Source: Diplonema japonicum (lineage: Eukaryota > Protista > Euglenozoa: Diplonemea). From it: a DNA stretch of 64,000 nt. A program made the translations under genes and the position numbers. A model generated the notes under the pieces. It was not told the DNA's origin. It worked only from the letters and a program-made list of their open reading frames with translations, and did no database searches. The DNA lies in contig OZ025732.1 in the NCBI GenBank assembly GCA_964019335.1, forward strand, positions 359,604 through 423,603, read 5' to 3'. This document shows positions 4,321 to 54,550 of the stretch, piece by piece (within the stretch, counting starts at the first letter, position 1; each line of letters begins with the position of its first letter).

Positions 4321-5016
4321 ATGAACGATATGACGGTGTTCGTGAAGACGGGAGGCGGGGTTCACGATGTGGAAGTGTCGGGGAAGGAGACGGTGGGGGG
4401 CCTGTACAAGAAGGCGGGGTGTGCTGCTGGTTTACTCGAAGGCAGGTTCAGACTGGTTTGGGAGGGAGAGGCCCTGAGCAGGAGCAGGGGCGATGAGCTT
4501 CAGGAGGTTGGGCTCGTGGAGGGCTCCGTGGTCCATGCGGAGGAGAATACAAGAACCGTTCGTCTGGAGGAGCTGAAGGACAGGAGCTCAGGAGTTGTTT
4601 CTGAGCTTGAAGGGCTGGTGACAGCTGACCCGGAGCTAGTTCTGGTGGTGGAGGTGGGGGACTCTGTCGATGTATTGTCCATGAAGAAGGAGGACCTTCC
4701 TTCTGGACTTCGGTTCCTCGTTGTCACCGACTCCGCAGGCTGTGTTACACAAATAGGCAGTGGATTTCTTTATAAGTGCGACCTGACGTCTGTCGTTCTC
4801 ATCCTCCCCAATGTAACTTGCATTCAGAGTACCTTCTTGTCAGGTTGCAAGGAGCTAGAAATCGTCGACTTGGGTCCGATGACCCATGTTGATTTCATTG
4901 GTCCTGCATTTCTGCAGATATGCGCAAGGCTGAAGACCATCAACCACAGGTTATTGATTGAGGTACCGCTACTACGGCGGTACGCCTCACCCACCACCGA
5001 GTCCACACTGTCCTGA
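4321..5016 (+). CDS. Ubl + BspA-like leucine-rich-repeat protein, 3'-truncated (possibly a pseudogene)
   Basis: N-terminal MTVFVKT...VEV...ETVGGLYKK...FRLVWEGE.L Ubl pattern; LRR units of the xIGxxFLxxCxxLxxVDL type; paralogue of 19212..20030. Confidence 0.75.
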   Translation: MNDMTVFVKTGGGVHDVEVSGKETVGGLYKKAGCAAGLLEGRFRLVWEGEALSRSRGDELQEVGLVEGSVVHAEENTRTVRLEELKDRSSGVVSELEGLVTADPELVLVVEVGDSVDVLSMKKEDLPSGLRFLVVTDSAGCVTQIGSGFLYKCDLTSVVLILPNVTCIQSTFLSGCKELEIVDLGPMTHVDFIGPAFLQICARLKTINHRLLIEVPLLRRYASPTTESTLS

Positions 5017-9330: not shown

Positions 9331-9339
9331 TAAAATAAC

Positions 9340-9990
9340 AATCCCTGGGGCTTACGGTATGCACCCAGTCCGCCCATCAGGACATCGGGCTCGGGATTGA
9401 CACGCCGATGCCTCCCGGCATGGGACACGCGACACTCCAACCGGCGGTCAGCGTCCAAACACTGACCCTGGAGGCGCCCGTTGCCCGAACCGAGGGATTT
9501 GCCCCCCCTTGACCCTCCTCAAACAAGCGGCGCCCAAGAGGTGATCGATCTCACGCAGGACTCCCCGGACAAACCCTCGCGTAAGAAGAAGCACGACGGC
9601 ACTGCATACGAGCACGAAAGCCGTCGTGGTAAGAGTTCTACATCCACCGACGACGAAGGGCTTCTCATCCTCCGGCCGGAAGAACCCGGGACCTCACTTA
9701 GAACCAGACACTTCGCTTTGCGCCTCCTGCGCGATCTCTCGGCCCCGGCACAGCATCTCGAGCATGACCTCGTCACCGGAGTAGGCCTTCCGCCAAGCAC
9801 CAAGGACGACAGTGCTGTCGATACCCACGCGAAGCACCACGTTCGGGGACCCGACACCCGAAAGGCAAATTCCAACAGTTCCAGCAGGGCATACATCTCC
9901 AGTCGAGACGGCTCTCTACCACCCTAGTGACATATATGAGGACTTGCATCTGATGCGATAGGGTGGCTCTCTAGCGGGGGCTTGCCCTGT
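9340..9990 (+). mobile_element. Probable fragment of another PLE-related C-terminal region
   Basis: ORF 9481..9927 has EVIDLTQD...RKKKH and LLILRP...RHFAL, echoing VVIDLTGD...KKKRK and VLVIGPP...GHW of the PLE protein; ends not defined. Confidence 0.35.
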
Positions 9991-11530: not shown

Positions 11531-12404
11531 AAGAAAAAGAATTAGCAAATTAGCAACGTTGTTTGTTGCCCTCCCCCACCCCCTTTTTATCTTCTTCACT
11601 TTCTCATATCCTTTTCCCCTTTTTCCCATTCGCCCCCTCCCCCACCCCCTTCACCTACCACCCACCAGGGAAGAAAGAAAGTAGTATTTCTCGAACAAGA
11701 AGTCATCGGAATTTAGAAAAAAGAAGAGTTGCGTCTCGTATTCACACCTTTTATATTTCCTCCTTTGCAAGGTCACGTTCAAGCAGACAGAACACAACAA
11801 CAAAACAAGAAAAAGGAGAAGATGAACGACATGACGGTGTTCGTGAAGACGGGAGGCGGGGTTCACGATGTGGAAGTGTCGGGGAAGGAGACGGTGGGGA
11901 TCCTACAAGAAGGCGGGGTGTGCTGCTGGTTTACTCGAAGGCAGGTTCAAACTGGTTTGGGAGGGTGAGGTCCTTGACAGGAACGGCTGTGAAGAGCTTC
12001 AGCAACTTGGGCTTGTGGAGGGCTTCCATGGCACAAGATCTTCGGCGACCCAGCAGTCCGCACGGCATGCCCAAACCCGAAGATCTTGGACAGAGTTAGG
12101 GTTTGCAATCGACTTGGGAAGACTGTACGCTCCGCGGTGTGCAATGTCAGCCAGGTCAGCCTCGCTGGCGTAAGACCGAAAACGAGCGATGTTGACCCAT
12201 GCCCTTGCGCCAAGTGGAACTCCTCGCACCAGCACGAAGGACACACATGCGGTATCGCCTCGGAGCTGACAGACGACGAGCAACTGCTGAAGATCCTAAG
12301 CATGGGTATGAAGTTCCGCCTGTCAGTCGACGCGCTCACGAGCTCCGAAAACCTGGAACAAGACTTGGTCGGCTTCGTAAACCTTCACCCTCGCGTCTGA
12401 AAGA

Positions 12405-15179
12405 TTGACGTTCCTACGGGCTCTACACACCAAAGCAGAGGCTACTCTGAACAAAGAGCTCCAGCAGCCCGTCTTTGATCCTAAGGTCCCCGAGCAGCTT
12501 AAATCAAAGCTAAAAGAGTTGCAGAAGGCTTTCGTGTTCTTGCCAGTCGACAAAAGCGTCCACGACATCGGCATGGTCTGCAAGGCACACTACCTACAAC
12601 TGCTCCACGCCCAGCTCGACGGCGAGTGTTTTGCAGAGGTACAAGACATGGAGAGCACAAGGCATAGCATCACAGAAGAGACTGAATCGTTCGGTATCAA
12701 GATCAAGTCGACAAAGATGCCATACCTTTACGGGGCCATCAAGTTACACAAAGAACAAGTAGGCTTCCGGTGGATTTCTGGCGTGTCGTCCCGAGACCCC
12801 CCTGCGACGGAGGAAGGCACCAACCCACAAGCACAATCAACGCAGTCCATAATGGAACGACTGCTAGCTGCAGGTTCCAACGGTGAGCGCGACGACGCCT
12901 TCAAGGCCGCCGCCCCAACGAACGCAGCAAGACCGGTTGCAGCGATGACAGGAGCGCACAAAGAGCTCTCGAGCCTCCTAAAAGCTGTACAACGCACCCT
13001 GCACGAGAAGGACCTGGAGTTCCGAAGCAAGGAGGTGAATCCGGGCCTCAGCGGAGTACGCCGCTTCTGGATCGTGGAATCAGCTGAGCAGGTCGCGGCT
13101 GAGATCAAGCAGCGGTACACGTTTTTCAAGTCGAAGGTCCCTGCCACCTACGACTTTAAAACGATGTACTCCAACCTGGACCAGGGACTCCTTCGAAAGG
13201 GCCTGGGCAGAGCAATCCGCGAAGCCTTCGAGCACGCCGGGAAGGAGCTGGTGATAAACAAGAGCGGAAGTAGCTTCGCGGATGCAGAAGACGACGACAA
13301 AGTGTACTCCCTCTCGATGGTGGAGGAACTAGTCGAATTCGTCGTTGACAACGCGTACGTCGAGCAAGGCGGCCGTGCTCTGCGCCAGGTGCGGGGCATA
13401 CCGATGGGCGGCAACGCGTCTCCGGATATAGCGAACCTATACTGCTATTCCGTCGAAGCCGACTACATCGACGGCTTGATCGAGAACAAGGACTGGGGCC
13501 GTCTCAAGGAGTTATGCTCAGCCGCCCGCTACATCGACGACTTTTTGGTTTGGGACACGACCCCCCCACCCGAAGAGCTGTACGGGATGTCCTACGCCAA
13601 GACGTCGGACAACGACGACGACGTTCCGTTCATCGGCATGCGGATCAGGACCGAACGGCACGAAACGCCGAAAAACAACTGGGTACGCTTGTCAGTCTAT
13701 GACAAGGCTGCGAACTGGAAGTTCAAGCCCACGCGTTTCACACACGGGCACACAGCAGCTCCCTCAACACAGGGCCCAGGTATCCTGAAGGGCATGATGC
13801 AGCAAGCGCTTTGCCTCACCAACAGCTCACCGGACTTCAAGAGGCAAATTGCAAAGACATACTTCAGTTTGCGCGATCGAGGGCACGAGCACAAACTCCT
13901 GAACCGAGCATTCCACGAGTTCCTTTGTGAGCGCGTCAACAAGAACTACGGCTGGGAGAAAGGGGAGCTCCAAAGTTTCTTTACCGAAGCAGGGAAGAAC
14001 TACAGAGCAGGGCGCGAACTTAACGAATGCTACCCGGATCTCGCGTATGTGGGACGTAAGGACCCCCGAAAGAGCACAGCCCTCCCCTCCGAACCGACGC
14101 AGACAACACAAGAGTCCACCTCCACCGCTGACACGAGCTCGCAAAAGGAACCACCTCCACAACAGCCGTTCTTAACGGAAACGACACCAATGGAGACACC
14201 TACATCGGAATACCCCACGTCGCTACACCAGGAAAGTGGCGAAGGACGCGTAGGCCTCGAGTGTGGTTGGGCCGTGGTGAACTGGATCGCAGACTACGCA
14301 GAGCTGGCACGCATGCCGTTCGCAGAGATGCAGACAATCCAACACCACCTCTGTACCTCGGAGCTCGCCCTGCACACCGAGGGGCATGCGAAGGAGTACC
14401 AGCCGAACGAGAAAGGCGACTTCTCCCAAGATACCCTGTCCCTTGCCTGCAAAAAGATCCTTGGCGAAGAGGCCTCGCTGCAGAGCGTGGTCAAGAGCGG
14501 ACGGTACCCAGTTCTGGTAATCGGCCCGCCGAAAGGCTCCAGGACGGGCCACTGGACTACAGCCATCAAAACCGGCAGGTCGTGGTACACCGTGATGGAC
14601 ACAGACAAGGAAGAACACCGTGTCAATGGACTGAGGCAGGTCCTACGTATGTATGACGAACAGAACATCCTGGGTATCACCGAAGAAAGCTGGGCCAGAG
14701 CAAGGACCATAAGGGAGCAGAACGGCGGCAGACCAAAAGCGTTCGACGTCCACGCTTGCATCAAGGGAGCGCAGGACGAGGTAATGCCACCGGTTTCAGG
14801 CCCCTGTTTGAGCCAGACCCCTGCAGCTAGCCTCACCCCCAATGATGACCCGGTCCCTTCACCTGGTCCGGACTCAGACGCTAATCCGTTCCACAGCATT
14901 GACCCGACCCCCGTTGCAGACCCGGTCCATACATCTGGCCCGGTCTCCGTCACGGACCCGGCCCCAACGGCTAATCCGGTCGCGGACTCGGTCCCCGCGA
15001 CTAAACCGGTCGCGAACACGGCCCCCGTCACGAACCCGGTCCCCGCGACTAGCCCAATCGCTGACCCGGTCCTCATCACAGACCCAGTTACCGCAGCTAG
15101 CCCGATCACGGACCCGGTCCCCGTCACAGACACGGCCCCCCGTCGCAGACCCGGTCCCCACAACCAGCCCAGTCGCTGA
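12405..15179 (+). CDS. PLE polyprotein, main segment: reverse transcriptase + Josephin-like protease + start of Pro-rich repeats (frameshift-joined to 12026-12400 and to about 15140-17205)
   Basis: RT motifs as above, YIDD at 13530-13541; Josephin-like Cys 14262, His 14550, Asp 14598. Confidence 0.85.
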   Translation: MTFLRALHTKAEATLNKELQQPVFDPKVPEQLKSKLKELQKAFVFLPVDKSVHDIGMVCKAHYLQLLHAQLDGECFAEVQDMESTRHSITEETESFGIKIKSTKMPYLYGAIKLHKEQVGFRWISGVSSRDPPATEEGTNPQAQSTQSIMERLLAAGSNGERDDAFKAAAPTNAARPVAAMTGAHKELSSLLKAVQRTLHEKDLEFRSKEVNPGLSGVRRFWIVESAEQVAAEIKQRYTFFKSKVPATYDFKTMYSNLDQGLLRKGLGRAIREAFEHAGKELVINKSGSSFADAEDDDKVYSLSMVEELVEFVVDNAYVEQGGRALRQVRGIPMGGNASPDIANLYCYSVEADYIDGLIENKDWGRLKELCSAARYIDDFLVWDTTPPPEELYGMSYAKTSDNDDDVPFIGMRIRTERHETPKNNWVRLSVYDKAANWKFKPTRFTHGHTAAPSTQGPGILKGMMQQALCLTNSSPDFKRQIAKTYFSLRDRGHEHKLLNRAFHEFLCERVNKNYGWEKGELQSFFTEAGKNYRAGRELNECYPDLAYVGRKDPRKSTALPSEPTQTTQESTSTADTSSQKEPPPQQPFLTETTPMETPTSEYPTSLHQESGEGRVGLECGWAVVNWIADYAELARMPFAEMQTIQHHLCTSELALHTEGHAKEYQPNEKGDFSQDTLSLACKKILGEEASLQSVVKSGRYPVLVIGPPKGSRTGHWTTAIKTGRSWYTVMDTDKEEHRVNGLRQVLRMYDEQNILGITEESWARARTIREQNGGRPKAFDVHACIKGAQDEVMPPVSGPCLSQTPAASLTPNDDPVPSPGPDSDANPFHSIDPTPVADPVHTSGPVSVTDPAPTANPVADSVPATKPVANTAPVTNPVPATSPIADPVLITDPVTAASPITDPVPVTDTAPRRRPGPHNQPSR

Positions 15180-15870
15180 CCCGGTCCCCGTCACGGACCC
15201 GGTCCCCGCATCTGGCCCGGTCGCAGACACGACCCACATCACAGACGCGATCCCCGAAACCAGCTTAGTCGTTGACCCGGTCCCTGCAAGTAACCCAGTC
15301 GCTGACCCGGTCCTCACCACAGACCCGGTCTCCACGACTAACCCGGTCGCAGACACGGCCCCTGCCACAGATCCAGTCCCCGCAACCAGCCCAGTCGCTG
15401 ACCCGGTCCCCGTCACAGACCCGGTCCCCGCAGCTAACCCGGTCCCTGTAACGGACCCGGCCCCCACAACCAACCCGGTTGGAGACACGGCCCCCATCAC
15501 AGACCCGGTCCCCGCAGCCAGCCCAGTCGCTGACCCGGTCCCTGCAGCCAGCCCAGTCGCTGACCCGGTCCCCGTCACGGATCCGGTCCCCGCATCTGGC
15601 CCGGTCTCGATAGTCCCTGACGACCCAGTGCCCACAACTGGCCCAGTCTACGTCACGGACCTAGTCAGTTCGCCTGGCCCGATCTCTGTCACGGACGCAG
15701 TCCCCACCACAGGCCCGGTCCACGCTTCTAGTCTGATCCCCTCCGCAGACCCGGTTCCAACACCAGGCGCAGCCTCCACCAGAGACCCGGTCCCCGCGTC
15801 TGACCCGGTCCTCGCCTCGGACCCGTTACCCGAAGTTGATGCCCTCCCCGTTACAGACCCAGTCCCCGTG
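14845..15870 (+). repeat. Coding minisatellite: degenerate tandem GACCCGGTCCCC-core units encoding PVADPVPVTDPVPAT-like repeats
   Basis: Dozens of GACCCGGTC/CCAGTCGCT units visible; Pro/Val/Thr/Asp-rich translation. Confidence 0.92.
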
Positions 15871-17205
15871 CAGATGGACCTGTCTGAACCTCTGGGGCAG
15901 CATGGATCGACGACATGGGTGCAACCCGAGCCCTCAACGAAGGCGGTCGCCTCACCACCCCTCTTGACGACAGCGGAGCCCTGGGTGCCGTTAGCTCTGA
16001 CGACGATGTCGCAACGACAGATGCAAAGCAGTAGCAGGACTGCGTTAGGACGGGGCACTTCTACTTCTCCTCCTTCTTTTTCTGCTTCTTCTTCTTTTAC
16101 GCGAACAACGACGACTGTCCATCAGAGTCTGCTGTGGTCCGATGTCCCGGGGCACCAACGAGGTCGTGGGGGCATCACGAGAGGTCGCACGTCAAGCCCC
16201 GGATCACAACCGAGACGCGCACACAGCGCAACGACCGCGTGTTTCCCTCGCACCCCAGAACGATTCTCACCCCTGGCCGGTCTGTCGGCTACAGACGACC
16301 TGTACATGCCGGAGCTGACACAGCACAGCAGAGACATGTACATGCTGGAGCCACCCGCGGATTTGACTGCTGCGACGGAACCTCCTCCTCCCCCACAGGG
16401 GGACATGTACATGCTGGAGCCACCACCCACGGAGTCGACGCAAACAGACGACGACCCCCATCCTCAGTCAGCGAGACCTGCCCCACGGGGGACCGATGAG
16501 GCACAGAGAAATCTGAAGGTGGTCATAGACCTGACTGGCGACGACGACGACAAAGTCTCTGCCCCGACCTCGACCCCGCCATCGGAAACGGCGGAACCTG
16601 CGCCACGGACGGAGGAGCTGGAACTGGCATGCCTCACTACCCACGACGGCGACGAAGCCCTGGCCCCACACTCAGCCCCAGCCCCGGCCCCGGCCCCGCC
16701 CCTCGCAAGCCACCACAAGAAGAAGCGAAAGGGAGGCGCATGCCCGGACGTGTACCTTGGCCACGACACCAAGCTGGTAAGGACCAGCACAGATCGTGCA
16801 CCAGAGCCACCTCTGCTCGTCAAATGGCGGTCCAAGAGCGCGAAGCGCGGGCAGTTGTGCGACGGACAAGCGGAGCCCGCAAAGAAGAAAGACCGCTTGG
16901 ACCTCCTCAGGGCGAACCGACGGTCGGGCAAGGCCGCCGTTCACGCCCTGGCTGAAGAACATCGAGCGGGTCTGGAAGATAAGCTCTCCCACACGAAACT
17001 GGCGACGGCCGGGATCGTCGAAGCGGAAGGGGAGTGGACGCCAGAAGCCATGATACGGGTCTGCAAACACGTGCTCGGCGAAGAGCCTAAAACCGCGAAG
17101 GAACTCGGGATTCACATGAAGTTTGTCCGGTTCGCCCTCATCCTGGACTTTGACAAGACGTGGATCATGGCCAGGTATGACTCGGAAGGCCTTCGTGGCC
17201 ACTGA
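15140..17205 (+). CDS. C-terminal segment of the PLE polyprotein (Pro-rich repeats, VVIDLT motif, KKKRK basic patch, second degenerate Josephin-like segment)
   Basis: ORF 14842..17205 takes over the repeat frame at the C6 run near 15136-15141; EGEWTPEAMIRVCKHVLGEE resembles KGDFSQDTLSLACKKILGEE. Confidence 0.7.
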
Positions 17206-18139
17206 CTGGCTTTTCTTCACCACGCTGCAGTGGCATAATGTGGGACAGCGCCACCCCCCAAGAACCACGAAGACCTTACGCAAGTAAGAGTGCTGGCCCG
17301 GCGAGCTACGAGGGCAAAAAACCTCATTTCTCCTTGGAGATGAGAACATATATTATAGTGCGACATGATCAGACTGGAACGGCCGCCCCGGGGCATCCTC
17401 TGCTCAACCCGGCGGACGTGGGAGGCCCTTCTTCGGAAGGTGCCAGTCGCTTGATCAGTGCCGTCGAATGCGCGCTATATTTTATATTTTATAAGTACAT
17501 ATAACAATCGATTGAAAGAAGAAGAACGTTTACCAAGGGCTTGTGGAGGGCTGTGTGGTCCATGTGGAGAACAAGAGGAGAACCGTTCGTCTGGAGGAGC
17601 TAAAGGACGAGAACTCAGGAATGGTTTCGGAGCTTGAGGAGCTTTTGTCAGCTGACCCTGAGCTTGTTCTGGTGGTGGAGGTGGGGAATATCGAAGTCTT
17701 GTCCATGAAGAAGGAGGACCTTCCTTCTGGACTTCAGTTCCTCGTTGTCACCGACCCAACAGGCTGTGTTACAAGGATAGACGAGGCGTTTCTAAACGAC
17801 CCTCATCCTCCCCAATGTTTCTACCATTGGCCATCAGTTTTTGATATCGTGCAAAGGATTAGAAGCCATCGACTTGAATGCGATGACCAAATCTTAAGTC
17901 CATTGGTAATAGCTTCTTCGACTTGAGTTCTATGGCAAATGTTTCTTCTATTTCTAAAAAAGAAAAAAACCTTTTTCCCATTCACTTTTTCCTTTAATTT
18001 TATCTTTCGCCAATAACAAGAGTTAGTTATATGTGTTTTCATACGTCAACATGTAAACAATAAACCTTATATCATCAAAAGGGAAACCTTACAAACTTTC
18101 TAAACTAAAATTGATTAGTTTACAAGTATTAGTCCGAAA

Positions 18140-18318: not shown

Positions 18319-19211
18319 TCTTACTTTCGCCTTTTTTGCCCTGTCGTTTTTACAGAGGCTGACTTTTTTGACCAGAGGAACAAACACGAGTACATTATTT
18401 TATTGTGTAAGATTTACATTTTTAAGGTTGACTGCGATACGACTAAAAAAACAGGGTGTGCAGCTAACCCTTCCCACTATACTTCTTGAAGTATACAATG
18501 TCTTGGGAACGTAACAGCTTGTCAGACAGAATTTTATAAACTAAATCCCCCCTTACTACTTTCTTACACAATTGAATAAATACCAACGTTACATCGCCTT
18601 TCCCCCATATTTTTATCCATTTTTTGTTACGTATCTGGTCAACACTTACGTTCTGGTTCGAAAGGTTTTTATTTTATTCCCTTTTCCGTTGGAAGAAATC
18701 TTTACCACCTGTTCTGTGTTCGGTGGACCTTATCTACACCGCTCCTGATCTACAACCTACAACCCGGGTTAACATGTTCCCCCCCCCCGGACCCCAGCTG
18801 AGGGGTGTCCCCCGAGAGGGACAGGCGCAGTAAGGCGGCGAACTTTGGCCTGGGAGCTAGCGATCTCGCGACCGTACAGTCATAGTCCCGGCTGTAAGGG
18901 TGACAAAAAAGACTTCAACATCAGAAGAAGAAGAATACATCCTGAGCTGAACACCCCGGTGCAGCAACAGTGGTGGTCGGATTTCTTCGCCCAAGGCGGA
19001 TGGAAACACCCGCTCTTTGGCTCCGAGACCCCAGGAGGCGATAAAACTAGACCTCCGGCCCCCCTGGTCGCAATCCCCCTCGACACACGGGCAGCCTTTG
19101 GCGCTGTTGCCTCACCTGTTTTGTTATCAGCGGCTGTCTTTTTTTTGTTTAATAAGGGCTTGCTCAAGTCTGACACTCACAGGGTTTGGGGTGGAACAGA
19201 AGCACAAGAGA

Positions 19212-20030
19212 ATGAACGATATAACAGTGTTCGTGAAGACGGGAGGCGGGGTTCACGATGTGGAGGTGTCGGGGAAGGAGACGGTGGGGATCCTGTACAA
19301 GAAGGCGGGGTGTGCTGCTGGTTTACTCAAGGGCAAGTTCAAACTGGTTTGGGAGGGAGATGTTTTGGACAGGAACGGCTGTGAAGAGCTTCAGCAACTT
19401 GGATTCGTGGATGGCTGCGTGGTCCATGTGGAGCCGGGTGTAACCGTTCGGCTGGATGCACTGAAGGATAAGGGTTCAGGAGTAGTTTTGGAACTGGAGG
19501 GGCTTGTGTCAGATGACCCTGAGCTGGTTCTGGTGGTGGAGGTGGCGTGTGTCGATGTGTTGTCCATGAAGAAGGAGGACCTTCCTTCTGGACTTCGGTT
19601 CCTCGTTGTCACCGACTCCACAGGCTGTGTTACAAGTATAGACGATTGGTTTCTTTATGAGTGCGACCACCTGTCATCTGTCTCACTCATCCTCCCCCAT
19701 GTTACTTCGATTGGTTCTGAATTCTTGTCGGGGTGCGAGAACCTAGAAACCATCGACTTGAATGCGATGGTTAACGTTTGCTCTCTTGGTCATTCCTTTT
19801 TGTCGATGTGCAAAAGACTAGGTGGCATCGACTTGAGTTCGATGTCCGGTATTCGTACCATTGGTGATTCTTTCTTGTCAGGGTGCGAGAGACTAGAGGC
19901 CATCGACTTAACTGCGATGGAGGAGGTTTCTTCCATTTCTCATCACTTCTTGTCGGGGTGCGAAAGACTAGTAACCGTCAGGTTGAGTGCGATGGCCAGG
20001 ACTTCTGCTGACGCAGGGATAATTCCATAG
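19212..20030 (+). CDS. Ubl + BspA-like LRR protein (3' end probably truncated near 20000)
   Basis: Same Ubl head as 4321 and 11822; LRR units IGxxFLSGCExLExIDLxAM. Confidence 0.82.
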   Translation: MNDITVFVKTGGGVHDVEVSGKETVGILYKKAGCAAGLLKGKFKLVWEGDVLDRNGCEELQQLGFVDGCVVHVEPGVTVRLDALKDKGSGVVLELEGLVSDDPELVLVVEVACVDVLSMKKEDLPSGLRFLVVTDSTGCVTSIDDWFLYECDHLSSVSLILPHVTSIGSEFLSGCENLETIDLNAMVNVCSLGHSFLSMCKRLGGIDLSSMSGIRTIGDSFLSGCERLEAIDLTAMEEVSSISHHFLSGCERLVTVRLSAMARTSADAGIIP

Positions 20031-27114: not shown

Positions 27115-28161
27115 CGTGGCAGCCACTGGATTATCGCTCTCCTTACAAACGGACGGTACGTCGTTAAAGACACCGACAAAAAGTTAAGGACCCAGCGTGT
27201 CCACCAGCTTTGCACGACCTACCGCGAGCACAACATCCTCTGCATCACAGACAAGACGTGGGCCGAGACAGCCCCGGGCAGGAAACACATTACTCGTGTT
27301 CTTGACCCTGAGGCAGAGCGCCGCGAGTTAGAGCCGGTCGTCACCCCGGCGGCACGGCAGGCGAGCTACTCGAATCCAGAAACGGCTGAGGGTGCTGTCA
27401 ACACCCCCGATGACCGCACCCTCCTTATCTACGTCGCCAAGGCCGCAGCCGTAGCTGCACATGCCACACGCGTCAGACGGTCTGACACGACAGCCGCCGC
27501 TCCATCTATGACTACACACACCGCTCACATCGAGCGTCCCGTCGCCATAACCTTCGTGGCCCTAGTTGCCGCTGTGGCCGCCCGGGCCGTACACACCGGA
27601 TGCTCTGTCGCCACCACATCTGCGGCGAGCCAGACAGACTTAGTGGGGACGATCCCACTTTTCCCGAAGGTCGCAAGTTTGTGGAAGTCTGCGCCACAGA
27701 TAGCAGTCGCAGCCTGTCAGACGGACCCGACCGCAACACCTGTGCTGTTCTCGTCTTTTCCGTAGCCCCCTCTTAGTAGCAAGCTGTCCCCAAAATACGC
27801 GGAATTGAGGACGCCCGTGGCCGCGCCGATCAAGCTTTTCACGAAGTCGGCAGAACTGCAGACACCCGTTTCACCAGAGGTCAGGCTATTCACAAGGTTT
27901 ATAGAACTGAGGACGCCTGCGATTTTCTCTTTTCCTTTTTCACTTCGTTCCGTTTTCATTATTCTTTCTGGCGATAGACTGATACGGGCCATGGAAGCAA
28001 CCTCTGCTTAATTCCTGGTACGTGGGAGGCTCCTCTTGAGGATGTCAGTCACCTTTTTCCTTTTTTATTCGACTCTCTGTTTTCGTATGCAGTATTTATT
28101 CTTTTCCACCCCTTTTTATCTCATTTCTTCGCTTCTCTATTCTAACTTTAAATCATTTCAG
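27115..28161 (+). mobile_element. 5'-truncated PLE family 2 copy beginning inside its Josephin-like domain
   Basis: Open frame 27115-27765 reads GSHWIIALLTNGRYVVKDTDKK...YREHNILCITDKTWA, homologous to GHWTTAIKTGRSWYTVMDTDKE...YDEQNILGITEESWA; the 3' end ...AAATCATTTCAG is repeated many times in the window. Confidence 0.78.
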
Positions 28162-34645: not shown

Positions 34646-37478
34646 GTGACGGGTCCACATCCCCCCTCGTGGGAACGGCAAGTTGAATCGGGAGTGGGGT
34701 TTAGAAAAGGAGAGAGAAGGGACGAGGTCTGGACGAGTACCAGTGACGTGTCTTCATTCTGTGCCTATAGCACCGCCGTGTCGCCCCAGTTGTTGTCGAC
34801 GGCTTGTTGCAGTACTGGTGAAGACCTAGAGGAGCGTCTACATTTAAAGGAGGATGCTGGAGCTACGCAAACTACCAGAGTCGGTGTTGGACGCCTGGGC
34901 TCAGCTCTTCCAAGCGATCGAAGCAACCGGGAGATGGCCAGAGGCCGTGAAGACGGCGCTGGTCACACTCGTACCAAAATGCGACGACGCGGGACCGCTG
35001 GAGCACAGACCCATCACGGTGACATCAGCGGTGTACAGACTTTGGGCATGCACGCGACTGGCAGACATCCTTCTCTGGCAGGAGAAGTGGGTACACGACA
35101 AGCAGTACGGATTCCGCACAGGCTTCGGGACAGAGGACGCGCTAATGGACCTCGCCCTGGACATCGAGGAATCTCTACTCGAAGGGAAACCGCTGGTCGG
35201 GGTGGCACTTGACTTTGCGAAGTGTTTCGACAGCGTACCGCAGCAACTAGTGATGGAGCTGGTGGAGGACATGGGCATGGAGACGGGCATTCTAAGGGCG
35301 CTGAAGGGGATGTACGCGGGCATGCGGAGACGTTTCAGGTACGCCACGGGCGTTGGAGAGGAGTTCCACACGACAAATGGAATCCTACAAGGGTGCCCCA
35401 TATCTGTGGTACTCATCAACGCGTTACTGGCAGTGCTGATGAAACAGGTGGAGGACGGCACGGGGGTCCGCTCGCTGTCAAACGCTGACGACGCGTACCT
35501 TCTGTCACAACTCGCGGCAGCACTGCAGAAGGGGGTGGAGGCGGTGGAGGACTTCTGCAAAATGGTTGGCATGAAGCTAAACGTAAAGAAAACCAAAACC
35601 TTTACGACAGGCGCCAAGGCACCGGAAGTGAAGGTGGACGGTGAAGTGCTGCAGGCAGTGCGGACAGTGGAGGTGCTGGGAGCCAAGCTGCGGACGGACG
35701 GCCAGCAGCAATACAACAACGACAGGGCCAAGGAAGCGATGAAGACGTTGAGCGGGCTGGGGGCGACCCCGCTGTCCTTCCAGCAGAAGGCGCGGATCAT
35801 CAGCTCCACACTGCTGCCAAGCTGCCTGTACGACGCCCCCTTCTCACCGCCAAGGACGGGGATGATGGAACTCCTGGTGATGGAGACGACATACACGCTG
35901 TGGGGCCAGAGGTATCGCACGCGGAGCCCCGGCGCAGTACTCTCCGTGACACTACCAGGGCACACACACCACCCGAAGATGACAGCAGCCTACAAAGCAC
36001 TGATGCTCATGTACAGGGCATGCAGGAAGGACGACCAACTGTGGGCACGCTGCAACGACATCGCAAAGCTGTACCGGGAAGGGAAGAAGGCGCTGGGCCT
36101 GGTGGGAAACCTGAAGCAGAGGTGGCTACCCATGGTGCAAGCAACCTGGGACCAGCTGAAGGACACCATGGCCATGGAGAAGGAGCGGTTCCGACACTAC
36201 ATCAGAGACAAGCTCAGGCGTGGTGAAGCGGAGGCCATCATGGGAAAACGGAGCTCCATGAAAGGAATGGCGACGGCAGCCGCTGTCGAGACAAACGAGC
36301 TATGGGGGAAGCTGGCGTCGTCGGACCCCATCGCAGCAAGGAACCTACGCAGGGTGATCACAGGCGCGGTTTTCTACATCCACCCACGGGGATGGCGGAC
36401 GGACGCAGTGGCACACATCCCACCGACGGAGGATGAGGTGGACGAAGAAGATTCCCGAGACGACTCAGAAGACGAAGAAGAAAGAGAGGCGGGAGGAGAA
36501 GGGGAAGTCGCGGAGCTGGAGCGCATGCTGCTGGCGGAGCAGAGGCAGCAGGACGAACCCGCAACGGCACGCTGCGACGTATGCGGTCAGATGCAACAGG
36601 TATCCAACATCCTGGAGCATGCACTGTGGGAGTGCGAACTGGCTGTCGAAGTAGGGCAACGGGAGGCACATGCAGGCACGACACGAACAGGCCTAGAACC
36701 GTGCATGAGGCTCCATGGCATCCTCCCGAGGGAAGCGGCCAAGGAGGACAAGGACAGGCTCGAGAAGACCCAGCGTTACCTGCTGGCTGTGGTGGGGGAA
36801 CGCGACGCAGCCTTGCAGGCAAAGAGGCAGCAGATCTACCGGACACACCAATGGCTGGAGATCACGGAGGGGGAGGCACACCCAGCACCAACAGAGGAGG
36901 AGTTCGCGAGGCTGCAGACCGGCAACACCCTGAAGGAGTACACGAAACCGGTGCTGAAATGGCTCAAGCAGCTGCGCTGGTATGGAGGGAACAGAAGCAC
37001 GGCAGTGTCGACGGTGGAGCTGGCGCTGGATTTCGAAAACGTGACCCAGAAATCCCTTGGAGGGAAGCTAGGGGAGTTGGCAGAGGTGCGACAGAAGGCC
37101 AGGAGACTGCACACGGTGATGAAGAAGGTGTGGAACACATGGGAACTAGGGAGACTGCAGAAGAAGGTGAAAGGAAGGAGGGCCTTCCCTGCTGAACCAT
37201 GCAAGAGAGTACATACGCTGCGATCAATCGGAGGGACGAAGGCGGTGATCGGGTGGAGTAGAAGAGCAATCTTTGCATCAACGAAGACCAAGTACGACCT
37301 GGAGGAGCTGGGGAAGCAATGGGCAAAGGAAAGAAGGGAAAAAGTAGCCAAGCTGGGGAGGAGGCCGGCACGACCACCGAAGAAGGAGAAACCGCTGCTG
37401 AAGGGGGATAGGTGCAGGTAGAGCATGAGAACAAGGGGGCGTCTCACAAAGACTTCCTTTAACTCATATATATATTTA
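34646..37478 (+). mobile_element. 5'-truncated LINE (group D, clade not assigned) with an inverted 5' segment and TA-rich tail
   Basis: ORF 34854..37421; tail CTTCCTTTAACTCATATATATA; 34740-34850 read on the minus strand matches the endonuclease-like fragment at 60078-60160. Confidence 0.85.
34854..37421 (+). CDS. LINE reverse transcriptase + C-terminal CCHC region; catalytic motif reads NADD
   Basis: RPITVTS, QYGFR, LDFAKCFD, GILQGCPIS, NADD, CDVC...EHALWEC. Confidence 0.88.
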   Translation: MLELRKLPESVLDAWAQLFQAIEATGRWPEAVKTALVTLVPKCDDAGPLEHRPITVTSAVYRLWACTRLADILLWQEKWVHDKQYGFRTGFGTEDALMDLALDIEESLLEGKPLVGVALDFAKCFDSVPQQLVMELVEDMGMETGILRALKGMYAGMRRRFRYATGVGEEFHTTNGILQGCPISVVLINALLAVLMKQVEDGTGVRSLSNADDAYLLSQLAAALQKGVEAVEDFCKMVGMKLNVKKTKTFTTGAKAPEVKVDGEVLQAVRTVEVLGAKLRTDGQQQYNNDRAKEAMKTLSGLGATPLSFQQKARIISSTLLPSCLYDAPFSPPRTGMMELLVMETTYTLWGQRYRTRSPGAVLSVTLPGHTHHPKMTAAYKALMLMYRACRKDDQLWARCNDIAKLYREGKKALGLVGNLKQRWLPMVQATWDQLKDTMAMEKERFRHYIRDKLRRGEAEAIMGKRSSMKGMATAAAVETNELWGKLASSDPIAARNLRRVITGAVFYIHPRGWRTDAVAHIPPTEDEVDEEDSRDDSEDEEEREAGGEGEVAELERMLLAEQRQQDEPATARCDVCGQMQQVSNILEHALWECELAVEVGQREAHAGTTRTGLEPCMRLHGILPREAAKEDKDRLEKTQRYLLAVVGERDAALQAKRQQIYRTHQWLEITEGEAHPAPTEEEFARLQTGNTLKEYTKPVLKWLKQLRWYGGNRSTAVSTVELALDFENVTQKSLGGKLGELAEVRQKARRLHTVMKKVWNTWELGRLQKKVKGRRAFPAEPCKRVHTLRSIGGTKAVIGWSRRAIFASTKTKYDLEELGKQWAKERREKVAKLGRRPARPPKKEKPLLKGDRCR

Positions 37479-48266: not shown

Positions 48267-49297
48267 TATTGCCAGTTTTTAGTTCATTCTGATTTCGAGT
48301 CATTAGTGACACGTGTCGGGTTGTGATCACTCCACACATACCTAGTTCTCATTTACTTTTTTGCTTCTTCAAATAACTACCTAACGTTGCAAGAGGGCCT
48401 CATAACGGTGGAAGGAAGCGACAGTGACGCTGCGGGCTAGGTTCCCCACATCTCTATTCTAACTTAAAATCATTTCAGCCACCTCTGAGACCATCAGCAT
48501 CCTGGGAGAGAGCTTTCTGTACTTCTGAGGCAGACACAAGCAGATGTGAATGCAAAAAGCACGGAGGACGCTACAGCACCTCCTAACAAGTTAGAAACCA
48601 TCGTTTTGAGAGGAGGCACTGATACTTTTCAGTGGCTTTTAAAGGCTAAGGTGCCACCAGGGGTAAGTTTTTCAGATGACACCCCAACCCCTGCACCTCG
48701 TGCCGAAAAGGAGGAAGACTTATCGAAGCTGCTTCTTATTAAACAAGACTGAGATCTACTGTGAAAATAAAGTGAAGCGTGAAATAAAGTGAAATATACC
48801 GCACCCTCCTTTTTTTTATTCGACTCTCTGTTTTCGTATGCAGTATTTATCATTCTTCACCGACGCGTCTGAACCAGCACTTCCTGGCGAACAGGCCGTC
48901 TTTTCTCTTTTCCTTTCTCACTTCGTTCCGTTATTTTCATTATTCTTTTCCCTCCCACCCCACAAGCACACAGGGGGGTAAACTAGGGTGAGGGAGGTGG
49001 TAAGCGACAGCTGCAGTAGGCGTGGGTGTGACGAGGTATGTATCCCTATCCCGCTAGCCTCCCCAGCCAATACGATTTTCTTCTTCTTTTACGTTTCCTT
49101 CTTTTAATTTGGAGATTAGTTTCTGATACAAATATGCGTTTGGCTTACCTTTTACTTTTTTACTTTTTGCGGGTGTTTTCCAAGGGGAGCTTGTTCCCTT
49201 GTCACTTATGGGGTCCGTGCCAGCACTACCTCTTATATTTCTTTTCGATTCGGCTTTTGTCACCACGCACCAACTCATTCCAGGGAACTCATTTCAC

Positions 49298-52200
49298 ATG
49301 TTCAATGACGGTAAGAGCCACCCTTTGGGTGAACAGATGATATCGGGTATAAATGACGAACCAGCTGGTGACCGCGATCCTCTGACGTACTATGAAGCGC
49401 CTCGTCCCGTGGACGTGGAGTTGGAACTTAATACTACACCCCTTACCGGCAGCCCCGCACTGAGCTACCATAGTGACCACCACCATTTGAACGAGAACGA
49501 CGAGAAGCTGGAAGGCAAGATCGATTTTGCGTGGAATGTCGTATCACACCATCCGAAGAAGGCTTACTGTGTCACCTGCGGGTCCTTCTGCAGCTTCTTC
49601 ATCCTCTTCGTCGTGTTTCTGATCACCTGGGGGTCTACTTTCTTCCCTTACTCTTCGGAGGTCCCACTCTACCTGCGAGGGCATGTCACCAAGCAGCGTT
49701 CAGACGCCATCGGGGAAGGGAAGGATATTGCCGACTACACTTTGCACGCGCCTGACGTTCAGCTTCGGCAGTCTGTCGATACGCTTGGCGGTGAGCGAGA
49801 GGACCTCACCCTTGTGATCATGTACTTCCCTGAGTTCGGTGACGTGCTTGAGACCAATATCCTTAAGAAGATGTTTGAGTTCGAGCAGCGTGTGATGGCC
49901 CGTGGCGAATTCGCAGACCACTGCCTCGTTGACTACAACAGCACGGAGGTCTCCTTTGAGAGAAGCAACAACGTAGACATGATAACAACGATCAACTCGC
50001 TGTCCCACAACTGCTCCGTGCACCACACCATCGTGTGGGCTTGCGACCCTTCCCTTGGCATTCCTTGCTCTCAGCTGGCTTCCACTCCTGTTGGTCTCAT
50101 GGACTGCAACAAGTCCACGGTTTGCTCTCCCTCCGAGATGGTCATTGAGGAGGACTTCAAGGTTAGCAAGGTTCACACCTATGCAGACTCCATCCCCGAC
50201 AGGAACACTGTTGAGGGGTTGAACAGTTGGAACTTCCTGAAGCTTGTCGACTCGAGTTTCGGAGCAGGTAACCAGATCGCAAAGGCTGTGAAGACGGAGT
50301 TCATCTTCGGTGCCCCTCTGAAAGGGTACAAGACTGTCAACGACGACCCCGATGGGCAGAGCAAAGACCTTTCAAAGTGGTTGTACGATGAGTACCACAG
50401 CTGGCTGAGCGACGGACAGATCGGCGGTGGGGGGGTATCGTATATTTACAACGGGCACGGAATGCTCAGTCTCTACATCCAGGAGACCCTCATCAAGGAC
50501 GCTATGTTCGCCATCGCTAGCATGTTCTTCGTCCTTGTCTACATCGCCTTCATGACCTCCTCATGGTGGCTCTCTATTATGGGTATAAGCCAGATCCTGA
50601 TGTCTTTCCCTGTTGCCTATTTCCTGTATTTCGGGGTGTTTCAGCAGAGGTACTTCGGTGTCTTCAACATGCTGTCCATCTTCATCATCCTCGGGGTCGG
50701 CGCCGATGATATCTTTGTGTTCCTTGACACGTGGGAGCAGTCGTCTCACAAGCTCAGAGGCCTTGGGAAGAGGATGTCGTATACATGGAAGCACGCAGGG
50801 AAGGCCATGCTTGTCACCAGCTTGAGTACGATGATTTCCTTTCTGTCCAACGCGAACTCATCGTTCCCGGCGATCCAGACCTTTGGGATCTTCGCCGCGA
50901 TGCTGGTTCTCGTGAACTACTGTGCGGTGATGGTGTTTTACCCGACGGTGGTCTTCATGTTTGCGACGCACTTCGAGGAGTGGAAATTCTGCTTTGGTGT
51001 TCCGAAGAAGTTTGCAGTGTACGTGAAGCAGGGGTTAAGTCCCAAGTCCTTAAATGGGAATAACGCGAAGGAGGCGACCGTGTCTGAGCCTGCTGTGAGC
51101 CGGTGGTTCAGGGAGTCGTACTCGTCAGGCATCATTGGCGCGAAGATCGGGATCATCATTGCGTTCATCGTGCTCATCGTCGCGCTTGGGATCCAGGCGG
51201 GGAAGCTGGAGCCGGACCCGAAGAACCCCCAGTTCCTGCCTGCGACGAACAACTACCAGAGGTTTCTCAATGAGAACCCGAAGCAATTTGCACGAGGTGG
51301 GTCTGTGAGCGCGGTGAGGGTGGTCTTCGCATGGGGGATCGACAAGGAGAACCCCATCGACAGGTCGGGCACGCGGGCCACGGATGTAGACGACCCTGGA
51401 AAGCCGGTGTGGGACCCGAACTTTAATCTCCCGATTGCGGCGCAGTGCATGCTGTCGATATGTGAAAAGGCTCAAATGAAGTCCGACGAGAGGAAGACAG
51501 GCGGGTACCCGGACTTTCCAATCGACTGCTTTTTAATCGACTTCAAGAAGCACATCGACGCAAACGACACAGCGCTCTGGCCCGCGGTGACGGGACCGGG
51601 TGCGGATGGTGACCAGTTCTTCAGCCTCTTAATACAGTGGCTCGAGGACCCGAAGGTGCTTTCTGATTGGAAGCCTTACATCCATGCTGAGCACGTCGAC
51701 GGCACCACAGTGTTAAGGTTCATCTCGACACAGCTGAAGCTGACCGTGGAGTCCTCGAACATCGACACCAAGGACGGCAAGGCCCTGTGGAGCACATGGG
51801 AGGACTGGTTCAACAGCCAGTACGACTCTGAGCCGTGTAAAAGCGTTGCAGCGCAGGCAGGAGGTTTCCAGTCGTCCTTGGGCTTCGTGTACGTCAGGGC
51901 AACCCTAGTCGAAGAGGCACTGAGCGGGATCTTTCTCTCTGTGGGGTTGGCCTTTGCCGTCCTGACCTTTGCGACTACAAACGTTTTGGTAGCGTTTTAC
52001 GCTGTTGTGGTCATCGCCTGCGTCGTTGTCTGCACCATGGGTATGACTGTGGTAGTGGGTTGGAAGCTTGGTGTCCTTGAGAGCATTGGGCTTGTGATGG
52101 TCCCTGGTCTCTCGGTTGACTTCGTGGCGCATCTTGCAGAGGCGTACATCGATTCTTCGTGTACTGACCGGGAGGGAAGGGTCCGCGACATGCTCGCCCG

Positions 52201-52447
52201 TGTGGGGATCTCTGTTGTGTCGGGTGCTGTGTCCACCCTTGGGGCTTCTCTTTTCCTCTTCTTCCCTGAGATCGTTTTTTTCAACAAGTTCGGTACCATG
52301 ATCTTTATGACGATTGGATTCAGCCTGTTCTGGGCACTGCTCTTCTTCCCAGCCTTTATGTCAACCCCCCTTGGACCGGAGGGGAACGTGGGCAACTGGT
52401 TCTACTATGCAAAGCTGATGTACTCCCGTTTCAGGGGCACCGCATAG
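49298..52447 (+). CDS. Dispatched/Patched-like RND-superfamily membrane protein with sterol-sensing domain
   Basis: Two units of 1 TM + large luminal loop + 5 TM; ILGVGADDIFVF (GxxxDD) and PGLSVDFVAH motifs; ATG 49298 chosen because it follows a pyrimidine tract and TTCCAG. Confidence 0.88.
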   Translation: MFNDGKSHPLGEQMISGINDEPAGDRDPLTYYEAPRPVDVELELNTTPLTGSPALSYHSDHHHLNENDEKLEGKIDFAWNVVSHHPKKAYCVTCGSFCSFFILFVVFLITWGSTFFPYSSEVPLYLRGHVTKQRSDAIGEGKDIADYTLHAPDVQLRQSVDTLGGEREDLTLVIMYFPEFGDVLETNILKKMFEFEQRVMARGEFADHCLVDYNSTEVSFERSNNVDMITTINSLSHNCSVHHTIVWACDPSLGIPCSQLASTPVGLMDCNKSTVCSPSEMVIEEDFKVSKVHTYADSIPDRNTVEGLNSWNFLKLVDSSFGAGNQIAKAVKTEFIFGAPLKGYKTVNDDPDGQSKDLSKWLYDEYHSWLSDGQIGGGGVSYIYNGHGMLSLYIQETLIKDAMFAIASMFFVLVYIAFMTSSWWLSIMGISQILMSFPVAYFLYFGVFQQRYFGVFNMLSIFIILGVGADDIFVFLDTWEQSSHKLRGLGKRMSYTWKHAGKAMLVTSLSTMISFLSNANSSFPAIQTFGIFAAMLVLVNYCAVMVFYPTVVFMFATHFEEWKFCFGVPKKFAVYVKQGLSPKSLNGNNAKEATVSEPAVSRWFRESYSSGIIGAKIGIIIAFIVLIVALGIQAGKLEPDPKNPQFLPATNNYQRFLNENPKQFARGGSVSAVRVVFAWGIDKENPIDRSGTRATDVDDPGKPVWDPNFNLPIAAQCMLSICEKAQMKSDERKTGGYPDFPIDCFLIDFKKHIDANDTALWPAVTGPGADGDQFFSLLIQWLEDPKVLSDWKPYIHAEHVDGTTVLRFISTQLKLTVESSNIDTKDGKALWSTWEDWFNSQYDSEPCKSVAAQAGGFQSSLGFVYVRATLVEEALSGIFLSVGLAFAVLTFATTNVLVAFYAVVVIACVVVCTMGMTVVVGWKLGVLESIGLVMVPGLSVDFVAHLAEAYIDSSCTDREGRVRDMLARVGISVVSGAVSTLGASLFLFFPEIVFFNKFGTMIFMTIGFSLFWALLFFPAFMSTPLGPEGNVGNWFYYAKLMYSRFRGTA

Positions 52448-53148: not shown

Positions 53149-54550
53149 GGGTCCCACACATTAGCCCGCTTCTACAGAAGCAGGTGGGCGCATAAAAGAG
53201 AAGGGAGTAGGAAGGAAAGGGAGGCAGAAACAGTGTTTCCCCTTTTTTTGGGGTGGGGAGCAACCTTTTTCGCCTTATGTTTCTCTCTTTATTTGTCTTG
53301 TTCTTTTTCTCCTCCCCTTATTTACGCGAAGAGAGGCAGGAGCTGGCACGACTCAGACTGCGGAGCTCTGCCATTATTCTCAGAACGGGGTTTTCGAGTT
53401 TATATGGTGGTATTTTCTTTCATTAGGCAGATCACCCATTGCAAGCAGGCACTCTTGCAGCCACTCCTTCCTCCTTCAGTGGAGCATGGCGTGTCGAGCA
53501 GCAAGCCCAAGAGAGCACGTTTCTCCGAAGAGAATATTCGCTCCGAATGAGATTTGAGCTTTTTTTTTTTCTTTCCGATAGTTAATCAACTGTTTTCCCT
53601 TTTTTTTTTTATGTGTTTCTTTTTATTCAAGTGCAATATGGTTAAGAGAATGATAACAAGCTTGTTTTTTCTTTGTGGCTGAGTAGTTGGAATTTACCTC
53701 CGCAGGTTTTTTTCTTTTGATTAATGAAAGGCAATATAATATGTTGATAGTGAATAGTTATTGCGTGAGAGGAGTAATGGTAGCATTGTTGGGCTTATCC
53801 TACAGGTTGGGCTGTGGCACAGACGATAATCAATTGACTTTCTTTTTTTTAGGCCTTTTGCTTTTTTCCCCTACTCGAGCGAAAAAACCAAAACGACAAA
53901 TCTTAACCATATTTTTACCCTCCTCCCTTTTTATGTTCTTTTCGTGTATTTTTTTCTTTTTTCTTTGGAAGGGGTTTTTTTCTTTTTACAGTGGGCGCCC
54001 CTCCCCTGCACACAGGCCTCCGTTCAATGCATTTCCGACGCCAGATCACTGGCAGGCGTTTTCTTCCCCTTTTCCCTTTGTGTTACTCCCCTTGGCACAA
54101 TCTTGTGTCTTTTTCTTCTTTTCACTTCTTTTGAATCATATGCACTGATACTCTTTAAGGGCTTAGAAAGATTTACAGACATAGGTCTTTCGCCATTGTT
54201 GCAGGAAAGGGCATGGCTACCTATGGGGGGCATTTTTCCTTTTACTTCAAGGGCAGCCTGGCTCTTTTCTGCTAAGTATTAGCAGCGGAGATATTAATGA
54301 CCGAACAGAACAGAACTACGGTATTAGCAACAGAGACGGTGTCCGGCTCACGTGGCAGGGGGGTGAGCTGAGGCGGGAATAAGTATCACCGTTGCTGGGC
54401 CGGAAGCATCTTAGGAGCTTTCCGAAGAAAGAACTAGTGTTGTCTTGCCTTTCTTCCCTCCCCTTTCCTTCAGGTAGTCCTTAGAGTACTTTGCTTTTCT
54501 TTCATTTTATTCCACCCAGGCTGGAGGGGAGAAAGTGGGGGGGCTTATCA

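Follow-up and report, generated by a model that had tools for sequence, protein, structure and literature searches.

A stretch of 64,000 nucleotides from the diplonemid Diplonema japonicum (assembly GCA_964019335.1, contig OZ025732.1, positions 359,604 to 423,603 of the forward strand; hereafter the window) contains a tandem array of genes for proteins with a ubiquitin-like (Ubl) domain, one of which is interrupted by a retroelement. The element, a 5′-truncated and frameshifted family-1 copy of a Chlamys-type Penelope-like element (PLE), extends over 12025..17536 (window positions; all window features mentioned here are on the + strand) and retains, downstream of its reverse transcriptase (RT), a predicted papain-like cysteine peptidase domain at 14229..14705 that is supported by profile comparison, a structural model and the ratio of nonsynonymous to synonymous substitution rates (dN/dS). 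Among known families, the Josephin domains of ataxin-3 and its kin appear to be closest to this domain in fold, and we argue that it probably equips the intact relatives of the element with a deubiquitinase.

The retroelement insertion is 5,512 nt long and is flanked by a perfect 16-bp target-site duplication (TSD), the 16-mer GGGCTTGTGGAGGGCT, of which the left copy (12009..12024) lies within the coding sequence of a host gene that encodes a Ubl domain and leucine-rich repeats (LRRs) and the right copy lies at 17537..17552. The empty site was rebuilt by joining 200 nt of upstream sequence, with the first TSD copy at its end, to the 200 nt directly downstream of the second copy, and in the resulting 400 nt the open frame of the Ubl-LRR gene is regained. 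Two uninterrupted paralogues elsewhere in the window match this rebuilt site from end to end, one at 4324-4728 (87.4%) and the other at 19215-19613 (86.6%). Because both TSD copies and paralogous empty sites are present, we regard the insertion as genuine, and the description of the element as TSD-bounded that had been given in a preliminary description of this DNA holds. Sequence joints that bypass the element stem from the paralogous genes and are not evidence of an insertion polymorphism. The insertion point falls directly after the Ubl part of one Ubl-fusion gene in the tandem array (4321-29547), whose genes combine an N-terminal Ubl domain with either BspA-type LRRs or ankyrin repeats, as called from Pfam LRR_5, Ank and weak ubiquitin matches.

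The window copy is a dead copy, truncated at its 5′ end and broken by two indels. Its coding sequence, at first pictured as one open reading frame (ORF), is instead split over three frames (12086-12400, 12405-15179 and 14842-17205) by an 11-nt deletion and one extra base. The deletion (12387..12389) puts the CxC region and the RT into different frames and was recognised by ORF and contig comparison: another family-1 copy, L024, reads through at this point, and contigs from all four sequencing runs have 11 extra bases after 12387. The extra base lies in a run of C at 15136..15136, where it moves the frame of 12405-15179 to that of 14842-17205, and three of the four runs (X1, X7 and X11) have contigs without it. 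The ORF of a further copy, L002, switches between the two window frames at 15130-15170; L002 also carries a separate frameshift of its own near 16160. Relative to a full-length relative of 2,152 aa, the window copy starts at the equivalent of residue ~535, so that ~1.6 kb of 5′ coding sequence is absent. At the other end, a stop codon and a 3′ untranslated tail occupy 17203..17536; no poly(A) tail was found in this 3′ tail, and an Rfam scan of 11800-17800 at E-values up to 1 gave no match to a hammerhead ribozyme or other RNA.

The Naiad/Chlamys clade of PLEs is defined by an N-terminal GIY-YIG endonuclease, a CxC motif in the linker between endonuclease and RT, which is diagnostic of these elements, and the motifs GxKF/Y and DK(G) (Craig et al. 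2021, PMC8557442). With the motif definitions of that study, the window copy contains a CxC (zf-CDGSH-like) motif, CPC...H.HEGH.CG, at 12200..12253 and a GxKF/Y motif (GMKF) at 12305..12316, followed by an RT region (12393..14090) that gives a weak match to Pfam RVT_1 (E 1.3e-3). A DK motif (DKS) is found at 12549-12557, and the RT motifs proper, which together span 12723-13646, include K.HK (12723-12752), motif A (13143-13169), motif B (13395-13424) and YIDD (13530-13544). The 81 residues between the motif A Asp and motif B form a long interval that would fit the insertion-in-fingers segment expected of the clade at this place. The ORF of the window copy used as query has at least 54 matches in the genome (62.5 Mb, 132 contigs), among them a second family with ~50% amino-acid identity whose open frames reach 2,175 codons. 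In one member of this family 2, L025:1215-7673(-), a single uninterrupted ORF of 2,152 aa encodes in order a GIY-YIG domain, a Lys/Arg-rich block, CxC, GMKF, DKS and an RT with YIDD. The GIY-YIG domain of L025 matches the Pfam profile at residues 263-303 (E 9.5e-4; 19.9 bits, slightly below the 22.6-bit cut-off), with GIIY..YAGQT and the subsequent R, H, E and N recognisable, and L025 likewise matches RVT_1. The same N-terminal GIY-YIG region is present in the family-1 copy L024 and is missing from the window copy because of the 5′ truncation. The earlier proposal of a 5′-truncated PLE with an N-terminal endonuclease is thus borne out by the CxC, GMKF, DK and RT motifs together with these relatives, and the genome search for copies that retain the GIY-YIG domain was successful in both families.

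Within this clade, Chlamys elements are told apart from Naiad elements by the lack of CCHH and CX2-5CxxC fingers, a non-metazoan host and the usual absence of canonical hammerheads (PMC8557442). No CCHH finger pattern was seen in the endonuclease regions of L025 and L024, which is why we place the element on the Chlamys-like side; the diplonemid host and the lack of an Rfam match agree with this placement. By its domain order and motifs, the element is a Chlamys-type Penelope-like retrotransposon. A word-based search with the EN-CxC-RT part (EN, endonuclease) of the full-length protein found P0025 as the sole relative, which has the order EN-CxC-GxKY-RT, is 24% identical across 92% of the query and lacks the peptidase domain; CxC and GxKF/Y-type motifs are common to the window copy, L025 and P0025. 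Among sequences in the Protein Data Bank (PDB), neither a profile of the RT nor a phmmer search with the 924-aa ORF gave a match. In language-model space the RT lies nearest to rotifer and streptophyte clusters that carry HTH_animal/RVT_1, which we treat as a lead only. A non-LTR (long terminal repeat) identity of the element was considered and rejected.

The two families differ in their state of preservation. Several family-2 copies (L025, L010, L011, L021 and L022) are 99-100% identical in amino-acid sequence and have intact, uninterrupted ORFs of ~2,000-2,175 codons, and this family therefore looks recently active, whereas every family-1 copy examined has lesions of its own. Three further PLE remnants lie in the window. 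A 5′-truncated fragment of a second PLE family at 27121-27867, 61% identical to family-2 residues 1381-1631, starts within the Josephin-fold domain and is matched by the family profile at E 4e-19. Two C-terminal fragments, at 9339-9741 (63% identity to family-2 residues 1657-1862) and at 18938-19045 (80% identity to family-2 residues 1942-1977), sit between tandem Ubl-LRR and Ubl-ANK genes.

The peptidase domain of the window copy is marked by ECGWAVVNW at 14259-14285, GHW at 14547 and MDTD at 14595-14606. With residue 1 set at 14190, the candidate catalytic triad consists of Cys25 (14262-14264), His121 (14550-14552) and Asp137 (14598-14600), and the triad positions first proposed (Cys 14262, His 14550, Asp 14598) correspond to exactly these codons. 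The domain is kept at 42-44% identity among the three PLE families of the genome and occurs in every sufficiently long copy of them. The blocks SGEGR.GLECGWAV.NW, G.FS, GP.K.S.SGHW and DTD are invariant across the PLE families, and the Cys, His and Asp residues do not vary among the three families and are retained by most homologues, with a His-to-Asp spacing of 15 in families 2 and 3. Between families, identity is 54% in the RT, 39% in the domain and 31% over the ~120 C-terminal residues; for the linkers on either flank of the domain, at residues 1210-1273 and 1478-1990 in full-length numbering, no between-family similarity is detectable. The dN/dS of the domain is 0.32 between families 2 and 3 (dS 0.50) and 0.25 against family 1, for which dS is saturated. 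Judged from these substitution ratios, the domain is under purifying selection.

What kind of peptidase this domain represents was approached through profiles and through a predicted structure. A profile of the family, compared with 177,635 distinct PDB sequences, reaches only four of them, all ataxin-3-type Josephin domains (E 0.35-0.76); the aligned stretch extends from the GwFS to the HW block, and in it the family His coincides with His119 of ataxin-3. An AlphaFold (AF2) model built from a 12-sequence alignment is confident (mean predicted local distance difference test, pLDDT, 85; predicted template modelling score, pTM, 0.81) and replaces an earlier three-sequence model that was weak (pLDDT 62) and in which Peptidase C39 and Josephin were not separable. 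In the 12-sequence model, the Cys opens a helix (25-36) that is followed by two more helices and a five-stranded sheet; a hairpin is flanked by His121, ahead of strand 123-127, and Asp137, the last residue of strand 132-137. When the model was placed in an all-against-all fold comparison over 48,161 chains, the best match was the ataxin-3-like Josephin domain in complex with ubiquitin (3o65_A; fold score 12.3 over 141 residues at 3.0 Å), ahead of human Josephin-2 (10.6), bacterial Josephin clippases and deubiquitinases (8.6-8.9), C39 peptidases (8.3-8.6) and, at 6-8, UfSP, staphopains, viral PLpro and USPs. Rescoring of the Foldseek list gave 11.7 for ataxin-3 1yzb, 10.3 for 2dos and 9.2 for the best C39-like domain, and the TM-score from Foldseek was 0.54 for Josephin versus 0.44 for the C39 peptidase PCAT1. 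Compared with Josephin, the C39 peptidases (ComA, PCAT1 and the HlyB C39-like domain) have fewer aligned residues (116-134 versus 140), a lower Z and a lower TM-score; they are bacterial secretion-linked domains without a sequence profile match to the family, whereas the context here is a eukaryotic retroelement polyprotein. A Foldseek search of viral predicted structures gave no match at E-values up to 0.001.

Several observations count against a Josephin assignment. Pfam Josephin (PF02099) does not match the window domain (14190-14760) at E-values up to 10, nor any of the 12 aligned family members, and a six-frame genome search with PF02099 found none, although the latter is uninformative since control genomes gave none either. 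The profile matches to ataxin-3 are by themselves not statistically significant (E 0.35). Foldseek E-values for PCAT1 (2.7e-4) and Josephin 1yzb (2.9e-4) are tied, and the nearest neighbours in the language-model space of the ESM Atlas are Peptidase_C39 clusters (0.92). The oxyanion Gln of ataxin-3, five residues before the Cys, has no clear counterpart; a conserved Gln/Glu stands seven residues before the Cys instead. The missing Pfam match, the tied Foldseek E-values and the C39 neighbours would fit a generic clan CA peptidase, C39-like or other, whose likeness to Josephin amounts to the common papain-like core, and because the language-model search leads to C39 clusters such an origin is possible. 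We nevertheless consider it unlikely, given that the four PDB sequences within reach of the family profile are all of the ataxin-3 type and have their catalytic His in the same alignment column as the family His. Neither Josephin nor Peptidase_C39 turned up when the window ORFs, the isolated domain and the 12 aligned members were scanned against Pfam.

From the combined profile and fold ranking, we conclude that the domain most plausibly has a papain-like fold with Josephin as the closest known family. The label Josephin-fold is used here, rather than that of a demonstrated Josephin-family member, because there is no Pfam match and C39 is a close second. The preliminary description had likened the domain to that of ataxin-3, and of this claim the fold has stood, in that the nearest solved structures of a confident papain-fold model are Josephin domains with 3o65_A at the top, and family membership has not, in that the HMMER-type check against Pfam Josephin gave no match at any threshold. 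Structural identity to the Josephin domains of ataxin-3, ataxin-3-like and JOSD1/2 (PF02099, MEROPS C86) is ~16%. The third triad residue of ataxin-3 is Asn134, whereas the third putative triad residue of the diplonemid domain is Asp. The diplonemid domain further differs from Josephin in its longer segment before the Cys, with no Gln at five residues upstream, and, unlike Josephin domains including those of the bacterial clippases, it sits inside transposon polyproteins.

Beyond the peptidase domain, the element encodes a low-complexity linker rich in Pro, Val, Ala, Asp and Thr (14830..15900), composed of degenerate tandem repeats with an 18-nt (6-codon) period, and a conserved C-terminal domain (16825..17202; M.R.C.H.LGE.P ... 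D.TW..A) that is 31% identical to the C-terminus of family 2. Aligned by hhalign, this C-terminal domain matches the second half of the peptidase domain over 57 columns (probability 90.8%, E 1.2e-6). It has a Thr in the position of the catalytic His and no Cys helix upstream, and on the strength of this alignment it probably originated as a copy of that second half which has since degenerated. The intact relatives in the genome encode a polyprotein of ~2,150 aa that consists of GIY-YIG, the Lys/Arg-rich region, CxC, RT, a short linker, the 160-aa peptidase domain, ~500 aa of low-complexity repeats and what is probably a degenerate peptidase half-copy devoid of the His.

Homologues of the domain are few: an exhaustive search of 1.84 billion representative proteins with a three-sequence profile yielded 20. 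All named homologues are diplonemid (Diplonema papillatum, D. japonicum, Flectonema neradi and Lacrimia lanifica), and no named non-diplonemid protein was found among these representatives. Several occur in transposons other than PLEs. A Flectonema transcript with an ORF of 1,748 aa (P0010) has the domain at residues 1-136, followed by an apurinic endonuclease-like (APE) domain and an RT; a 2,209-aa gene model of D. papillatum annotated as SLACS (P0022) has an OTU domain at 161-245, an RT at 680-901 and the domain at 1643-1820; and a 777-aa gene model (P0009) has a Mutator-like element (MULE)/SWIM transposase with the domain at 577-741. P0016 contains three tandem copies of the domain. Searched against the genome, P0009 and P0016 found known PLE copies only. 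Divergent copies of the domain with 35-52% identity also occur outside the three PLE families, some of them in tandem within one protein (C91:371793-372255, C93:175525-175999, C95:276964-277197, C85:193874-194089 and C52:214501-214716; also P0016). Judging from these domain arrangements, one module family appears to be common to four kinds of transposon in diplonemids, i.e., PLEs, APE-RT long interspersed nuclear elements (LINEs), an OTU-RT element and MULEs.

We think it fairly probable that the intact kin of this dead Chlamys-type copy encode a Josephin-fold peptidase that is active and acts in trans as a deubiquitinase. Integration would proceed by target-primed reverse transcription through the endonuclease and the RT, and this would account for the TSD and the 5′ truncation. 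The peptidase domain may be an active thiol peptidase that recognises the C-terminal tail of ubiquitin or of a ubiquitin-like protein, and it could, for example, shield the element protein or its ribonucleoprotein from ubiquitin-dependent degradation or host control. Provided that the enzyme is active, we hold with moderate confidence that deubiquitination is its most likely mechanism. The replacement of the Cys in three homologues, by Ser in P0011, Trp in P0013 and Gly in P0016, counts against an active enzyme. The sequencing runs with element sequence contain it as contigs, and none of them is on record as RNA.

The position of the domain between the RT and the long low-complexity extension would also suit a cis-acting protease that cuts the ~2,150-aa polyprotein, for instance to free the EN-RT part from the C-terminal extension in the manner of the papain-like proteases of RNA viruses, and C39, the second-best fold match, comprises processing enzymes that cleave after Gly-Gly. 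Yet no cleavage motif is kept at the domain borders across families, as a GG after the domain is found in family 1 only, and polyprotein processing would be unexpected where the module is joined to the DNA transposase of a MULE or stands at the N-terminus of a LINE; the OTU domain alongside the module in P0022 also speaks against it. This alternative seems improbable to us, and the domain is not expected to be a dedicated processing protease; a trans-acting accessory role is favoured because the position of the module varies, one copy is fused to a DNA transposase and another is paired with OTU. A catalytically inert domain that serves as a ubiquitin- or protein-binding module would be in keeping with the loss of the Cys in some homologues and with the degenerate half-domain already present in the element, but with the triad invariant in the three PLE families and most homologues and a dN/dS of 0.25-0.32 we judge it very unlikely. 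Chance resemblance is rejected by the cross-family conservation, the 20 homologues, the purifying selection and the confident papain-like fold.

More tentatively, the active trans-acting deubiquitinase that we favour may extend beyond PLEs: Josephin-fold deubiquitinase modules restricted to the diplonemid lineage may have moved among Chlamys PLEs, APE-RT LINEs, OTU/SLACS-like elements and MULEs, countering ubiquitin-dependent host control, and the dead half-copy in the PLE may be a binding or regulatory partner.

The remainder of the window contains further large ORFs, all of which are uninterrupted and on the + strand. Two are retroelement ORFs that do not belong to PLEs (373-2520 and 34854-37421), one with RVT_1 and RNase H and the other with RVT_1 only. 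An intronless gene for a Patched/sterol-sensing protein lies at 49199-52447, and another intronless gene, at 54491-59611, encodes a voltage-gated cation channel with four domains (1,706 aa), whose closest relatives, with 57-61% identity, are from Diplonema papillatum and eukprot transcriptome entries.

A Chlamys-type PLE with a Josephin-like extension has already been published in weaker form. Chlamys-1_cBra from Chara braunii has an ORF of ~1,800 aa with an N-terminal GIY-YIG, CxC, an RT and a C-terminal extension with weak homology to Josephin; behind the Josephin-like motif comes another in which Cys and His are conserved (Craig et al. 2021, PMC8557442). The preliminary description, which held that a Josephin-like protease was not known from PLEs, is contradicted by this element. 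The diplonemid elements resemble Chlamys-1_cBra in their domain order, including the C-terminal motif with conserved C and H, and differ from it in that their host is a diplonemid rather than a streptophyte alga and that the fold is derived from a confident model rather than from weak sequence similarity. Outside PLEs, the Dualen/RandI non-LTR elements are described as encoding a Josephin-like cysteine protease for which an interference with protein degradation was proposed (Kojima and Fujiwara 2005, as cited in PMC8557442). As far as that account goes, the two cases are alike in that a retroelement polyprotein includes a thiol protease resembling Josephin as an accessory; the endonucleases of the non-LTR Dualen are of the APE and restriction-like types, whereas the diplonemid element is a GIY-YIG PLE. 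No link between the two at the sequence level was found, although no search was aimed at one. Ulp1-like proteases occur in NeSL/Utopia elements (PMC4640811), and these, together with OTU in LINE-like elements (in this genome and in Diplonema), parallel the present case as recurrent captures of proteases of the ubiquitin/Ubl type, although Ulp1 belongs to clan CE and OTU to a separate family, both of which differ from the Josephin-fold domain.

The hosts listed for PLEs with an N-terminal endonuclease are green algae, spike mosses and a slime mould, and diplonemids are not among the Chlamys hosts given (Craig et al. 2021, PMC8557442). In the literature searched, we found no paper that treats both Penelope-like elements and diplonemids, and the Diplonema genome paper makes no mention of PLEs or of deubiquitinase domains in its transposons. 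What is new here is the host lineage, the structural support for the fold, the evidence for selection, the degenerate half-domain and the sharing of the module by four transposon types. PLEs with an N-terminal endonuclease are thereby extended to diplonemid Euglenozoa, and what had been a weak homology to Josephin in one published PLE becomes a structurally supported domain under selection, which at a compact 160 aa is directly assayable. The presence of the module in four kinds of transposon suggests that tampering with the conjugation of ubiquitin or ubiquitin-like proteins may be a general strategy of mobile elements in diplonemids, parallel to that of viral deubiquitinases.

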